DNA from: Intoshia linei
Taxonomy: Eukaryota; Animalia; Orthonectida
Length of the DNA stretch: 64,000 nt
NCBI GenBank assembly: GCA_001642005.1
Contig: LWCA01000062.1
Span: 1,413-65,412 of the forward strand
Direction of reading: 5' to 3'
Part shown: positions 1,583 through 49,791 of the stretch, one piece after another
Layout of the letters: the number at the start of each line of letters is the position of its first letter
How positions within the stretch are numbered: the first letter of the stretch is position 1
Made by a program: the position numbers and the translations under genes
Notes under the pieces: generated by a model
The model's database searches: none
What the model was told of the DNA's origin: nothing
What the model saw: only the letters and a program-made list of their open reading frames with translations

Positions 1583-4523
1583 CTAAAGGCAGTGGTTGAA
1601 ATGTGATCAATAGATTCGATAATTCTGTGTAAAGCTGAATCTGCTCCAATAGTCATATCTGTACCATAAAAGTCATTATCTATCGATCCCACGATTCCAA
1701 CAATGTTGAATTTCATTTTTAGTCTATATTCCTCTTGGTTGATTTCGTCTAATATAGTAAAATAATCTAGTACGTTAACAGGTTCATTGAAATAACCAGT
1801 AAAATACAATACGTATCAATCAATGAAAATAAAATATCAATTTAATTAAAATTGTATTGTACTAATGAAACAGTTGACATTTACTGATTTATATAATCAT
1901 ACCATTTTTGTATAATTCTTCAATTAAACTTTCCCACTCTGATCTAAATGTATCTGCACCAGTGAGACTACCATCACCTAACATAATTTTGATAAAATAT
2001 TAAAAATGCGTAACCTCCAATTACAATTAAATTTACTATTTTTCGTTTGACCAAGTTTAGAGCGGCTTTATATCGACCCTCACGTGTTCTAAATTCCTTA
2101 CACCTTGAACTTCCCAAAACGGTGCCGCCCTAATTACAATTATAATACATGTACATAAGGGTGTCACATCAAATATTTTTTTTAAGAAATTCAAAAACAT
2201 ACCCAGTAGATTAGATGTAATTTGATAAAAAAATAACAATCCAATGACTAATTCTGAAAAATACTTATTAATGACTCAGCGTTGATTAATTAAGTTAACC
2301 CACAAACATTGATTAAACCCCAAAACATAATGATCATAATAATTATAATTATAAAAAAAATATTTTCGTTATTATAAAATAAAGTAAATTGTAAATGATG
2401 CAGCTAAACTCGTTTTATTAAAATATACAAATATTTTTAATTTTTCTCTATAAACAAAGCAGAAATTTCACTTTTTGTAAAAAAAATTAAGAAAAACATA
2501 AAAATAAACTTAAATTTAGCTCTTTTTTGTTAATTAAAAATTGATCAACGCTGAGTCATTAATGAGTATTTTTCAAAATTAGTCATCGGATTGTCATTTT
2601 TTTATTAAATTACATCTAATCTACTGGGTATGTTTTTGAATTTCTTAAACAAAATATTTGATGTGACACCCTAAGTTACACTTTATTAATGCAATTTTAT
2701 TACCTTTTGAATTATACCCGACACATCCACCCAATTTGATTTAGTTATATAATTTTCACCTTTAATCAGTCCAATGTAACCCTAATATTTTATATATTAC
2801 AAGTCGCAATCGCTTTCAATTATATAACATTACATTTTAAAAAGATGCATTTTCCGATTTTTACACGATTATCCTTATAAACCCCATTAAATTATAATAT
2901 AATTATGTTAATATTGTTGGAAANAAAACAAAATCATCATAATAATTATAAAAAAAATATTTTCGTTATTATAAAATAAAGTATATTGCAAATGATGCAG
3001 CTGATCGCGTTTTATTAAAATATACAAACATTTTTAATTTTTCTCCACAAACAAAGCAGGAATTTAAGTTTTTGTAAAAAAAAATTAAGAAAAACATGAA
3101 AATAAACTTAAATTTAGCTCTATTTTGTTAATTACTTAATTGATCAACGCTGAGTCATTGATGAGTATTTTTCAAAATTAGTCATCGGATTGTCATTTTT
3201 TTTCAAATTAAATCTAATCTACTGGGTATGTTTTTGAATTTCTTAAAAAAAATATTTGATGTGACACCCTAGTGTACATTCTCCTTATCATTATATTCTA
3301 TGTATATTATGGAATTCACAGCCAATCCTTTTGGCCAAATATCCTCCTTACATTATAATAATAATAATGTATATTTATTTAATGAGAAGGATGGTTTTGT
3401 TTCTTTGAGGACAGTAATGCAATATTTATAGATATATGTGAAGAAGAAACACTATTCTANCCCCAAAACATAATGATCATAATAATTATAATTATAAAAA
3501 AAATATTTTCGTTATTATAAAATAAAGTAAATTGTAAATGATGCAGCTAAACTCGTTTTATTAAAATATACAAATATTTTTAATTTTTCTCTATAAACAA
3601 AGCAGAAATTTCACTTTTTGTAAAAAAAATTAAGAAAAACATAAAAATAAACTTAAATTTAGCTCTTTTTTGTTAATTAAAAATTGATCAACGCTGAGTC
3701 ATTAATGAGTATTTTTCAAAATTAGTCATCGGATTGTCATTTTTTTATTAAATTACATCTAATCTACTGGGTATGTTTTTGAATTTCTTAAACAAAATAT
3801 TTGATGTGACACCCTAAGTTACACTTTATTAATGCAATTTTATTACCTTTTGAATTATACCCGACACATCCACCCAATTTGATTTAGTTATATAATTTTC
3901 ACCTTTAATCAGTCCAATGTAACCCTAATATTTTATATATTACAAGTCGCAATCGCTTTCAATTATATAACATTACATTTTAAAAAGATGCATTTTCCGA
4001 TTTTTACACGATTATCCTTATAAACCCCATTAAATTATAATATAATTATGTTAATATTGTTGGAAATGTAAAAAATGTTGCAATTGGAAATGTACAAAAT
4101 TTATCAAACCGTATGTATTATTTTGTGAAAAAATTGTATGTATTAATTTGAATGGATAGACAGCTCAGTTAAAAATGACTAACACAATTATAGTGGATTA
4201 ACTATACAAGTGTAAGTAACGTAAATAAGCTTTTAATGTATGAATGGTTCAGGAATTTCTAAACATCATACATGATAATAAATAATTTAATACCTCTTTG
4301 ACCATATAAACTTCGGATCCTAAATAAATGCCCATCCTTACCACAGCCCGAATAGCAGCATTCATACCTGAAAATGGGCAGTCATATGAATTTCAATAAT
4401 TTAACCTTGACAGTCTCCACCACTCGTCAAAACTGCAATGGACGCTAAATTTCCAATGTTCAAGCTTGTGATAGATGATCCTTCATGACCAATGCTATTC
4501 ACAATTGATAATCTGCGTTCCAT
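1583..4523 (-). CDS. PFK: ATP-dependent 6-phosphofructokinase, 5' exons only (gene continues left of the window)
   Basis: Spliced translation: MERRLS...[36 protein letters not shown]...[28 protein letters not shown]...[11 protein letters not shown]/...[33 protein letters not shown]. These are diagnostic PFK N-half motifs, with GT-AG introns. Confidence 0.95.
2159..2671. mobile_element. MITE with long (about 130 bp) terminal inverted repeats, probably Tc1/mariner-type; further partial copies at about 2925-3270 and 3461-3814
   Basis: gggtgtcacatcaaatatttt...gactcagcgttga at the left end and its reverse complement ending gatgtgacaccc|ta at the right end. Confidence 0.75.
3461..4066. repeat. Apparently identical duplicate of 2318-2923 (includes one PFK exon), bounded by single-N gaps; likely assembly overlap
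   Basis: Sequence identical by eye. N at 2924 and 3460 lies exactly at the copy boundaries. Confidence 0.8.
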
Positions 4524-45500: not shown

Positions 45501-47169
45501 AGATTTTTGTACCCCATCAGCAAACTTTTTAATTGCTTTTTAAATTATTTCTTGTTTTAAAGTTGTAATTCGCTTCGATTTAATTGATTTTTATTCATTT
45601 GAAATGTTATAACTTGTTCTAAGGGAAACATTGCAGGTTTTTGGGATATTTACCTTTTCGATTTTATCCTTCAAATCTTTTTTTATTAATTTTGTAACAA
45701 AATAATTAAAAACTTCAATTTCTACGACTTGTTTCAGATTTTTTTACCAATGAAAGATCTTGCCAAATCGTTTAATATATAAAAAATTGAAAAACATAGC
45801 ATGTAGTTTAGATTGGTTTATATCAGTGATGGCAAAGTACGTGTTTGCGTGTAAAAAATACACACTTGAAAAAATATATAAGTTGACTTCAAATAAAAAA
45901 TTCAAAGATTTATAGCCAATTTTTCAAATTGCGTGGGTCATCCTCTAGTTGGATTTCATTGCATTATACACCAAGAAGTACTAAGCTTTAAAACAGCTCT
46001 GAGTCACTTAAATATGGTTGTTATCACTGCAACCAAAATCATTAATTACATCCAAGCACGCGCCTTACACAAAAGAGAATTCACTTTGATTTTAAAGGAA
46101 ATAGAATCAAGTTGTAATGAACTGCTTATGTACAGCAATATCAAATGTTCAGTAAAGGTAAAGTTCTTGAGCGCTTTGTGGAATGCTTATCAGAAATTAA
46201 AACATCTTTAAGATATAAAGATAATTTTTAATTAGATTATAACGATTGGATTGTTAGTGTTATGTTTTTTACTGACCTTTTATTGCATTTAAATGAACTT
46301 AACCTTAAATTTCAAGGGTACGGGAAGACTTGTAATGTTTAGTATTATTATGGCATTTGACTGTAAACTATCAATATTCTATCGTGATATAGAAAATAAA
46401 GATTACAAATGTTTCCCTAAATTGAAAAAATTCATGATAGAATCAAATTTTTAAATATAAATAAATGTAAAAATTATTTTTTTAACTTATTTTTAATCAA
46501 GTTGTTCGACTTAATTGATGGTTTGGATTGACCTAATATTTTTTAAATAAAAACAGAAAAAAATTTCTGAAAATAGTATTAAATTTAACACACCTAGTTT
46601 TAGTTACTGCCATCACTGGTTTATATCAATTTTAAAATTGCTGCGAGGGAGTATACTATTAAGTAGCCGATAATAGATTAAAGATTGGAACCACTAGACT
46701 CAGAGTCTAACCTATCGTACTAGAGACCCCTCTTAGGTGGGGTCGACAACATTTTTCCAAATTGACCATTAAAAAAATTTATATTCGTTAATATCAACTA
46801 TACATGTATTTTGTGTTAACTTTAAAATGTCTAACCAACAACATTAGTGAGGTGGTTAGGGCTTATATTTGGTCGTCATCGTTTGTGAAATTTTTTTTAA
46901 GTGCCTATTATTCATTAGCAGGTGTCTTCGAACTGGGTCGACTCTGGCTAAACTAACTGTATAAGTGTCATTGTTCCATGATTTATTAATGGAATAAGTA
47001 TTGTGAAATTTGTTAGTTTTAGATAAAATTCGTAAATATAATTAATATTGAGGCATTTATTCAATTTAGAGATAAAGAAGGTCTAACAGTTTTCCACTAT
47101 TTTGTTCAAGACATGAAGGCAATGGTTTTCTCTATAATAGGACTACATTTCAAGATAAACCCTATATAG
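42501..47169 (+). CDS. MAGOH: Mago nashi, exon junction complex core (6 exons; last intron about 3.8 kb of nested TEs)
   Basis: [25 protein letters not shown]...YANNSNYK...[13 protein letters not shown]...[30 protein letters not shown], 146 aa. Confidence 0.96.
44521..46651 (-). mobile_element. Decayed Tc1/mariner-superfamily transposon in the mago intron
   Basis: TA|ctccctcgcag ... ctgcgagggag|TA. Fragments [19 protein letters not shown] and [12 protein letters not shown] with frameshifts. Confidence 0.85.
45824..46618 (+). mobile_element. hAT (Charlie/SPIN-like) deletion derivative nested in the Tc1-like element
   Basis: TIRs cagtgatggca / tgccatcactg, 8-bp TSD GTTTATAT, and transposase motif FHCIIHQE...[16 protein letters not shown]. 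Confidence 0.88.
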
Positions 47170-47234
47170 GAATATGTTTAAATATATTAAATTTTAATAC
47201 AAAATTTTAAATTTTTTTGGAGATTATCGTTGAT

Positions 47235-49791
47235 TTATTTCATTGTTCTCCATTTTGACTCGGATTCATATTTTGAACATCCAACGTTAGAACTTGAGAT
47301 ATAGGTGTTTGGTGCAGATGTGACAGATAGTTTGATTTTTTTTGGTATGCTGTTAGATTGCAAGACTGATCGATCTGAGCATATTCTTGATTTTTGTTGC
47401 CATACATCTGAGGTTGGTTTATAGGTTTGTAAATTTCTCTGTAAGATAATGATTGCGTTGTCGGATAATTTGACATCAGTCCTGTCGTCTCCATTGGATT
47501 CCTGGAAATCTTCTCGTACATTTGAGTGTTCGGGTGTTGTTCCAATAACCAATTTATCGATTCCACCGTTGTGCATGGGCTCTGCGGTATTATCGAGTTC
47601 TCCATCTCTAGGTATGGAATGGCATATTCCTCGCTGATCATTGTTTTGTTCAGATTGTTGCGATTTTGCAACAAGTAATTTAGCCGTTGTGTCAAGTTTC
47701 TGTCTAAAAATGGAAATAAAAAGGCAAATAATTATTTAGGCAAAGCAATAATAAATTTTTTTTTACTACTCTAAAAAACACACAACTTGTACACAACTTG
47801 TACCTTTGACATTTTTTTCAAGTGTTTTGATAAGGTGTATAGTGGAATCAATAATATTGAGTTTGGTGTTGGGTTTGTTGACAATATCTTCAGATTTTTC
47901 AATCATCTCTTTGAGCGTCTGAAATGATTCATTCATATCTCGCACTCGCACACTAAAAAATTATTTTTGAACAAGGACAACCCAGTCGGTAACATTAGCT
48001 ATAACGCACACCTCAAATGGAACCAGTGTCACCCTATCAAAAACAATGAGTTTAAACCCTATTTTAGCAAAGCAACTATTACAATTTTTATTGAAAGAAA
48101 CCTAAGTTGACGGTTTTTATTTTGCAAGTTTACAATTACAGTAGCGGAACTCTGCAGTATCATGAGCTTTGTCATGTTCTGGCAATTGCCGCGAAAAGGG
48201 CAGATTATTTTTCCAAGTGTGTTATAGGCTTCGTTAATATCACGGACACGTAAACTATAATGTATATAATGTTCAGACGGGGCTGACTTACCGTTCTCTC
48301 TGGTTGTTAAGTTGTCTTCGTATAATTTCCTTCTTTGTCTTATTCTCTGGGGCGTTTAACTCAGTGTCTCTACAAATAATTACATTAAGACGTGTACATT
48401 AAATTACTTTTCTGTAGTATTTACATTGACAGGGTTAAATGGAATGAGTTTATTGTATTGGGCGTCAAAGGAATTATGAGCAAAATTGTCGTTTCCTGGA
48501 AATTTTTCTCTTCTGACGTAATGAGATTTTACTTCAAAGTTTTTGTATTCGTTTAGTTTTTCTTGATTTTCAATCACAATTTGAGAATTATTAAATTGAT
48601 TTATACTGTGTATATTTTGTTGTTCTGTCAGTAAACGTAACTGTTCAGAATTATGGATAATATTTTGAGCTCCTTTATTCAAAAAATCGCCATATACACT
48701 GGATTTTTGAGTATCGTCGTTCATAGGTTTTGATTCTTCAATCTAATTTCATTTGTTAGTTTTATTAAGTATTTGTTACGTTTTTTAAAGAGTTGCTTAT
48801 CAAGTTTTCGCAGTTGGTTAATATTTTTTCGTTCCAATCTAAAAATTATTTTCAAAACAAACACAATCAACCTTCTATTTGATTGATGTCTTCATACATA
48901 TCGGAGTCGATTTGTTTGTTTGGGTGTCCAGTATTATCATTATTAATCTACGTTTATATTTACATAACACTTTATTGTTTATTAAAGTAAGCTTAATTTA
49001 AAATTTCAAAGTAATCATTACAGTCTGCAATGCTTCGATTAAATTGCCCATGTATACCATACCCATTAAAACATGTTAACTGGCAGTCATTGAATTAAAA
49101 TCAAAAGCCCAGAAAACTACCAGCCTGAAGGTGACACAAAAAGACTGAGATTAGCCACTTATGTAATTCAATGGCTAAAAATGAATTAAAAGTTTTTTCA
49201 TCTTAATAAAAATGAGAGCAATCTGGTATTGCCTATCAGTCAATTCTGACAAGGGTGCAATATAAAAACAAAAAATACACTGTCATTGGATATCTGATTA
49301 TAGTCATTCGAAAATTCGGAATTTTGAATATCATAAAGGGATACAGAATTGTCAGTGTTTTTGCTGGCTAAAAGATAATTAGACTATATTTGGAAGGAAT
49401 ACTTTGTGAAATGAGTTTATCGTTAGCCACAGCATATGTTCCCACAGAAAAATTCTGAGACTCGTTTGATGTGTAAACATTATAATTAACAGCATCACAT
49501 TTTATATCATAGTCACAATTGTAAAATGTCATATTTTTCTTTTTAATAGAATCATTAACGTCTGAAGTGGACTAAAAATTAAATTATATACTATCATCTT
49601 ACATCATCTCGTAAGTTTTCATTAGAATCTAAAAAATGAACATTTACTTTACTTTTTGGAGATGAAATGTCATATTCAGACTCTGCACGAGAATCCTGAA
49701 ATAATAAAAAATTAAACAAAAAAATTAATACTATTACACTAGATGACCACTCGTTTTCTCTTTTTGAAGTAAATTTTGTTTCAGAATCCAT
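47235..49791 (-). CDS. Class I bHLH E-protein (daughterless/TCF3/4/12-like) with two alternative HLH exons and a dual-frame last exon
   Basis: Basic exon 48292-48369 (RRQLNNQRER). HLH-A 48102-48254 ([14 protein letters not shown]...MTKLMILQ). HLH-B 47804-47952 (VRVRDMNESFQTL...NTKLNIID...LEKNVK) then DRNL. Matches E-protein [21 protein letters not shown]...TKLLIL...QVRERNL. Confidence 0.88.

Follow-up and report, generated by a model that had tools for sequence, protein, structure and literature searches.

Most documented cases in which a docking site pairs with a selector to choose among tandem exons come from arthropods, along with a few mammalian genes. According to the accounts given in PMC4691838, the docking site of Dscam exon 6 lies upstream, after a constitutive exon (Graveley 2005), whereas that of 14-3-3 xi lies downstream of the exon cluster (2011 work, cited in PMC4691838). 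A stem of this kind had been predicted in an E-protein gene of the orthonectid Intoshia linei, where the short intron before the first of two HLH exons (A) was proposed to pair with the sequence just upstream of the second (B) and thereby loop out exon A, and both insect genes had been invoked as analogies. The layout fits that of Dscam exon 6, with its upstream docking site, in that a docking candidate stands right after a constitutive exon, its complement stands right before the downstream variant, and the proximal variant would be looped out; however, the Intoshia locus has two variants and one selector, and its docking candidate takes up nearly the whole of a 37-nt intron, the 5' splice site included. 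The analogy to 14-3-3 goes no further than the idea that RNA pairing picks among tandem duplicated exons, as its downstream docking layout fits L047, a related E-protein locus considered below, and not the Intoshia stem.

Zipper stems in yeast introns bring the 5' splice site closer to the branch point and leave both of these single-stranded. The Intoshia proposal shares with them the notion of a stem by which a long intron becomes short in effect, but here pairing begins at intron position +2 and extends over the branch-like motifs CUGAAC and CUAAU. A further model is that of Ivanov and Pervouchine (2018, PMC6071210), in whose account competing structures can arise by tandem duplication, and Intoshia is alike in combining tandem exon duplicates with intronic complementary elements. 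As far as that account goes, selectors should under this model be direct repeats of one another, whereas the Intoshia sequences before exons A and B are complementary and not similar.

Within the same gene family, vertebrate TCF3 (E2A) also has two tandem alternative exons for the HLH dimerisation surface. The vertebrate E12/E47 exons carry the basic region as well, whereas in Intoshia and in annelids the basic region forms a separate constitutive exon. In human TCF3, the choice between E12 and E47 is set by hnRNP H1 and PTBP1 (PMC6795145, PMC6120717); it is thus under the control of proteins and not of RNA pairing.

The E-protein gene of Intoshia linei

The gene (A3Q56_00888; deposited protein OAF71314.1) lies on the minus strand of the window, i.e. 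the whole 64,000-nt stretch of DNA that was analysed. Among the database matches of the deposited protein, itself excluded, all 46 are TCF3/4/12-type or unnamed bHLH proteins, and a basic region of the RRxxNNxRER plus xRVRDxN type precedes the HLH domain, as in class I bHLH E-proteins. Judged by its sequence, the gene is a member of that class (TCF3/TCF4/TCF12, daughterless). Searches of the organism's own 41.6-Mb assembly found the locus in single copy and the arms of the proposed stem without repeat copies. For the exon assignments below, exons were searched singly and the deposited protein was taken as it stands in the database. All features are listed in the order of transcription.

Intron W, 48407-48370, minus strand: 38 nt, before the basic exon; its GT..AG borders fit the deposited protein.
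Basic-region exon, 48369-48292, minus strand: 78 nt, in frame, with equal phase at both ends; ends in ..RRQLNNQRER.
Intron X, 48291-48255, minus strand: 37 nt, 38% GC; proposed docking side, with paired positions 48290-48267 and an extension to 48262.
HLH exon A, 48254-48102, minus strand: 153 nt (0 mod 3); Pfam HLH match at 2.3e-5; weak-looking donor GUUUCU.
Intron Y, 48101-47953, minus strand: 149 nt, 33% GC, with three GGG runs.
Tract of intron Y complementary to W, 48029-48002, minus strand: adjoins the core target of X and shares 48011-48007 with the extension pairs of X.
3' arm in intron Y, 48005-47971, minus strand: core pairs with X at 47997-47972; five extension pairs, 48011-48007, lie outside the arm, just 5' of it.
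HLH exon B, 47952-47804, minus strand: 149 nt (2 mod 3); Pfam HLH match at 3.6e-6; leads on into the last exon in its canonical ..RNL.. frame.
Intron Z, 47803-47704, minus strand: 100 nt, 24% GC; opens on a tandem duplicate of the donor, 13 nt long.
Last exon, 47703 to about 47235, minus strand: open in two frames, whose stops lie 5 nt apart.

Exons A and B both match positions 12-53 of the Pfam HLH profile and stand in tandem behind the basic exon. The deposited model joins the two, prolongs exon B into its intron and reads the last exon in the frame that is not reached from a 149-nt exon B; it probably fuses two alternative exons. A comparison of positions 47100-49300 with Rfam gave zero matches, so the GC-rich tract of Y is not accounted for by any known intronic RNA gene. 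A relic exon within intron Y was considered and rejected, as the translations of Y, inspected by eye, hold no HLH-like sequence.

Complementarity of introns X and Y

The arm sequences and coordinates of the original prediction match the window sequence exactly, and most of what it had said of the duplex itself holds. It had counted about 25 pairs, G-U included; RNAduplex gives 21 pairs (2 of them G-U) for the quoted arms, in four helices of 4+6+3+8 and at -21.3 kcal/mol, and 26 pairs for the whole introns, five of them beyond the arms, at -22.2 kcal/mol. The perfect 7-bp block AACAUUA/UAAUGUU is present among the pairs of the quoted arms. A duplex of -22 kcal/mol falls within the range of working docking/selector pairs. 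From the last pair, at 47972, to the exon B acceptor, whose AG lies at 47954-47953, there are 17-18 nt, close to the 20 or so foreseen. The two introns are also unusually GC-rich, as had been noticed: X has 38% and Y 33%, as against 12-31% in the eight other introns of the gene. In each, the richest 15-mer holds 10 G+C, a level reached by 0.66% of the 15-mers of the window, whereas the gene's other short introns attain 2-6. The island in X is C-rich and that in Y is G/U-rich, the latter intron having three GGG runs; the other short introns of the gene have neither such islands nor a single GGG run.

The X:Y complementarity is real and slightly, if marginally, better than chance. With both introns dinucleotide-shuffled, its energy was equalled or bettered at p=0.051/0.043, with Y alone shuffled at p=0.038 and with X alone shuffled at p=0.14. 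It falls in the top 1.2% of random genomic placements of the same geometry (4% when these are GC-matched), and Y ranks in the top 1.2% of 1704 window tiles tried against X (2.1% GC-matched). Shuffling of the arms alone gave p=0.002, but the arms had been picked after the match was seen. When all 45 intron pairs of the gene were put to one test, five had p<=0.05 and X:Y was the fifth of these, outranked by pairs such as i3:i5 and i1:Z for which no role is conceivable. The original prediction was to fall if the duplex energy proved no better than that of shuffled controls; it is about 2 sd better, but only 1 sd better with X alone shuffled, and the prediction thus came close to falling. Given these marginal controls and the fifth rank among 45 pairs, the order-specific complementarity of X and Y is ordinary; the unusual part is composition, namely a C-rich island facing a G/U-rich one.

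A second complementarity, between W and Y

Intron W forms a duplex with 48029-48002 of intron Y at -20.7 kcal/mol, with p=0.004-0.007 when both are shuffled and 0.019 when W alone is, and with a place in the top 0.5% of tiles. Among 3194 tiles, the energies obtained with both X and W were reached only by tiles that overlap Y, trivial antisense self-matches aside. The duplex relies on G-U pairs, its energy being -20.7 kcal/mol in the sense orientation vs -6.9 in the antisense, and it crosses X:Y in a pseudoknot topology. It is treated here as a lead rather than a result because it was one of many post-hoc tests and because the smallest of 45 p-values will be <=0.004 about one time in six. Two further ideas were tried and rejected. 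An inverted-duplication origin is at odds with the targets of W and X, which stand in the wrong order in Y, as well as with the strong strand-specificity of W:Y, and pairing that would loop out exon B found no excess (p=0.72 for Y:Z and p=0.44 for X:Z).

Folding context and splice signals

The stem is less secure once its surroundings are folded along with it. The 351-nt cut proposed for folding along with the original prediction does contain it in the MFE, with P about 0.6, but taken as a whole that fold does not exceed shuffles in stability (z -0.24), and no other cut had the stem in its MFE. With 20 nt of the basic exon added, stem P dropped to 0.22, and with the whole basic exon to 0.03; it was 0-0.13 in longer cuts and about 0 in the full pre-mRNA. 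In the longer folds, the end of the basic exon becomes a local partner for the C-rich part of X, and forcing all exons to be single-stranded left stem P at 0.02. Since long-range folding predictions are unreliable and nested-only models exclude crossing helices, these figures are not decisive. The stem appears not to be robust across the folded contexts modelled; as a putative device of splicing control it is plausible.

Three details of its fit are awkward. Positions +2 to +5 of the sole donor available to either isoform are taken up in the stem. The perfect block, moreover, joins the best branch-like motif of X (CUGAAC) to CUAAU, the best one ahead of exon B, and might thereby obstruct the acceptors of both exons. 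One selector only is found at the Intoshia locus, with neither a second selector nor a rival pairing for exon A. Splicing that skips exon A would remove a 339-nt intron, in a genome whose median intron is 57 bp (PMC6543705); such a length is not prohibitive in this gene, which has an annotated intron of 331 nt. Exon A is 153 nt long and in frame, and A and B therefore need not be exclusive.

Related HLH exon clusters in annelids and other animals

Searches for close relatives returned distant ones. The last-exon peptide had no match in a word-indexed protein database. The exon B peptide, compared with 1.84 billion representatives, found the deposited I. linei protein as well as read-through ORFs of other animals, and no I. 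variabili sequence. The deposited protein, used as query, found distant E-proteins only, with no orthonectid relative and no transcript-derived isoform among them. A metagenome scan seeded with one of the read-through ORFs yielded 80 animal E-protein loci, many of which we infer to be host DNA of gutless oligochaetes. All of the loci compared, oligochaete and other, share with Intoshia an intron at the same position and in the same phase, namely within the final Arg codon of RER (CG/GT).

The oligochaete clusters comprise three HLH exons in tandem, and their common length of 146 nt makes these exons exclusive by frame. In some species the third is decayed (an in-frame stop and no AG acceptor in L011, an in-frame stop in L023); L047 has five exons of this kind. 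Exon A of Intoshia is closest to the first exon of the annelid clusters (46-48% identity, with a common ..MTKLMIL.. motif). Exons A and B both align with the annelid clusters, and Intoshia thus has tandem HLH exons in common with annelids. From this likeness, the A/B pair looks inherited, in agreement with the placement of orthonectids within that phylum (PMC6543705).

A counterpart of the Intoshia stem was sought in these clusters. Flanks of the first HLH exon in ten oligochaete clusters, all distant from Intoshia, showed no excess pairing (p 0.32-1.0), and the oligochaetes yielded no conserved block after the basic-exon donor and no docking site there, ahead of the first HLH exon or beyond the last one. 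A 13-nt inverted repeat of L020 recurs, among 14 loci searched, in L028 only. RNAduplex on whole annelid introns of 2.6-3.6 kb gave long, rambling duplexes of no use. The oligochaete intron after the first HLH exon does hold five conserved (U)GCAUG blocks, and the one before the third HLH exon a conserved G-run block; these blocks point to protein factors, in the manner of human TCF3. Intron Y of Intoshia has no GCAUG and three GGG runs, and a Fox-1_C search of the I. linei genome had no match, which is weak evidence.

L047 offers a different picture. Some 940 nt downstream of the cluster lies a sequence complementary to a motif that recurs after exons 2, 3 and 4, at distances of 40-145 nt. 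The duplexes have energies of -36 to -37 kcal/mol, which were reached by 0/300, 1/300 and 1/300 shuffles. This makes the locus a good docking/selector candidate, and pairing may thus serve this gene family, in another layout.

Weighing the explanations

The account favoured here is of a constitutive basic-region exon with two HLH exons of ancient origin, A and B, in tandem behind it; the choice between these two would be set mainly by splice-site competition together with putative proteins bound to the GC islands. The weak GUUUCU donor of exon A, the short, first-come intron X and the G-runs of Y are hints in this direction, and a role for proteins is proposed in part because protein control of the family is known or suspected in other animals. 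Pairing of X with Y may at most add to the exon choice, and the analysis leans slightly towards their complementarity being plain chance or incidental to the presence of two GC-rich islands in the introns, to which proteins probably bind. Some observations sit uneasily with a by-product. GC islands against an intron background of 12-31% GC suggest selection, and these two complement each other; W, too, is unusually complementary to the adjacent part of Y, and L047 is a docking/selector candidate; the pair sits exactly at the position expected from Dscam exon 6, and -22 kcal/mol is strong in absolute terms.

That the stem works as originally conceived, with X docking and the pre-B tract selecting, so that the branch region of X is hidden, exon A is looped out and exon B is chosen, is doubtful, though it is the most credible of the other accounts. 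Position, length and energy all fit such a stem (21-26 pairs, -21 to -22 kcal/mol), which stands in the top 1-2% of genomic placements and at p=0.002 for the arms alone, but its distance from shuffles is only about 2 sd (p 0.04-0.14) and its rank among 45 intron pairs is fifth. Both arms are GC islands unique within the gene, and the stem is a local MFE with P about 0.6, yet it is gone from folds that include the basic exon, where local pairing outcompetes it. If formed, it would cover donor positions +2 to +5, which the splicing of exon B needs, in addition to the CUAAU before B. The A-skipping intron of 339 nt, set against the 57-bp median (PMC6543705), might seem to call for such a device, but the 331-nt intron in the same gene indicates that long introns are spliced anyway. 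Exons A and B are old and common to annelids, which argues that some mechanism of choice is needed; this one has a single selector and no competing pairing for exon A. L047, finally, indicates that pairing may be used in the family, whereas ten oligochaete clusters held no counterpart of the stem. In a further version, the pairing would have a function of an inhibitory or kinetic sort: by tying up the 5' splice site, together with the branch regions of X and Y, it would delay splicing and select no exon. This version could claim that the stem covers the donor GUAAG as well as both branch-like motifs; it has the same statistical weakness as the looping model and is very improbable.

It is also improbable, if less so, that A and B are not alternatives at all, both being included or A being a simple in-frame cassette, with the complementarity having no part in exon choice. 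The 153 nt of exon A keep A+B in frame, and OAF71314.1 joins the two; that model is, however, a prediction, and one that also runs exon B into an intron. The annelid counterparts, at 146 nt each, are exclusive by frame, and the last exon, open in both frames, suggests splicing from A directly to it. To our knowledge, an HLH-HLH product with no second basic region is without precedent.

Returning to the favoured account, in which the complementarity is incidental, W:Y leaves scope for a more elaborate idea. The 60-nt, GC-rich tract of Y at 48029-47972 might be a pairing hub beside the exon B acceptor, binding both of the tiny introns that flank the basic exon; exon A would be looped out through X, and the basic exon as well through W. 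Such a hub, which is unlikely, would together with L047 make pairing-based choice of E-protein HLH exons recurrent in spiralians.

Implications for the gene family

Were the stem to work, choice by docking site and selector would extend to an annelid relative that is extremely reduced and whose median intron measures 57 bp. It would also be apparent how a genome of this sort copes with an exon-skipping intron of 339 nt, and the E-protein family would gain an RNA-based isoform switch. Were the hub to prove true, pairing of W would lead to an Id-like, HLH-only product, which is possible because the 78-nt basic exon is in frame, and the locus would be, as far as we know, the first such system in an animal with tiny introns. 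Lineages appear to differ in how HLH exons are controlled, with UGCAUG and G-run blocks in the oligochaetes and a docking/selector candidate in L047. The more solid outcome, at the level of sequence comparison, is an arrangement of tandem, apparently alternative HLH exons behind a separate basic exon that Intoshia and the annelids have in common.

Possible alternative splice sites in the Intoshia linei E-protein gene

In the E-protein gene A3Q56_00888, which lies on the minus strand, the donor of HLH exon A (48082-48101 region) reads GUUUCU, with a pyrimidine at +3, and a consensus-like GUAAUA is found 19 nt 3' of it. If GUAAUA served as the exon A donor, translation would stop in the following exon, within its first few codons.

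The basic-region exon (48292-48369) is 78 nt long and has equal phase at both ends, and its skipping would produce, in frame, an HLH-only, Id-like product. Intron W (48370-48407), which precedes this exon, is complementary to 48002-48029 in intron Y (-20.7 kcal/mol; p about 0.005), and this pairing is strongly strand-specific. The target of intron W adjoins that of intron X, the intron between the basic-region exon and exon A, and the W:Y and X:Y pairings cross.

Downstream, the exon B donor is tandemly duplicated (47778-47803), a 13-nt unit beginning GTACAAG being present twice. The last exon (47235-47703) has two frames that are open over about 150 codons, with their stops 5 nt apart; the canonical E-protein motif ..RNL.. 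is continued in the frame entered from a 149-nt exon B, and with the second of the duplicated donors, exon B would be 162 nt long and the last exon would be read in the other open frame. The deposited model, OAF71314.1, employs a third donor, at 47766, thereby extending exon B by 37 nt into intron Z, and joins exons A and B in tandem (47767-48254). This model probably merges two alternative exons. Elsewhere in the gene, an annotated 331-nt intron (48948-49278; 30 % GC) contains three GGG runs, and an exon or element missing from the annotation could lie within it.

The Hyalella azteca protein KAA0201310.1 (P0006) has two HLH segments visible in its sequence. For P0013-P0015, which are Pongo TCF3 isoform X4 and the TCF4 of Taenia and Echinococcus, query coverage (24-26 %) suggests a second HLH.

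Tandem HLH exons in other animals

The oligochaete-like E-protein loci from the metagenome scan (L004-L046) have a separate basic-region exon followed by three frame-exclusive tandem 146-nt HLH exons, as in the following example.

Three-exon oligochaete-like HLH cluster
L007:5222-6458

Conserved in these loci are five (U)GCAUG blocks in the intron downstream of the first HLH exon and a G-run block in the intron upstream of the third. The third HLH exon is decayed in some species, with an in-frame stop in both L011 and L023 and, in L011, no AG acceptor. No published description of these clusters was found in the literature searched.

Another animal E-protein locus, L047:1-3500 (JAAUXW010237106.1), carries five HLH exons in tandem.

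HLH exons of L047, 146 nt each
79-224
757-902
1199-1344
1762-1907
2334-2479

Exon 1 is flanked by a 21-nt inverted repeat (21-41 / 507-527; 90 %). Motifs of the GGCYTGCAAMCA type lie 40-145 nt downstream of exons 2, 3 and 4, and a tract 3' of the cluster (~3405-3440) is complementary to them (-36 to -37 kcal/mol; p 0.000-0.003). This tract is a candidate downstream docking site, a layout of the type seen in 14-3-3 and Dscam exon 4.

HLH exons in tandem may be a widespread arrangement that gene predictors often fuse.
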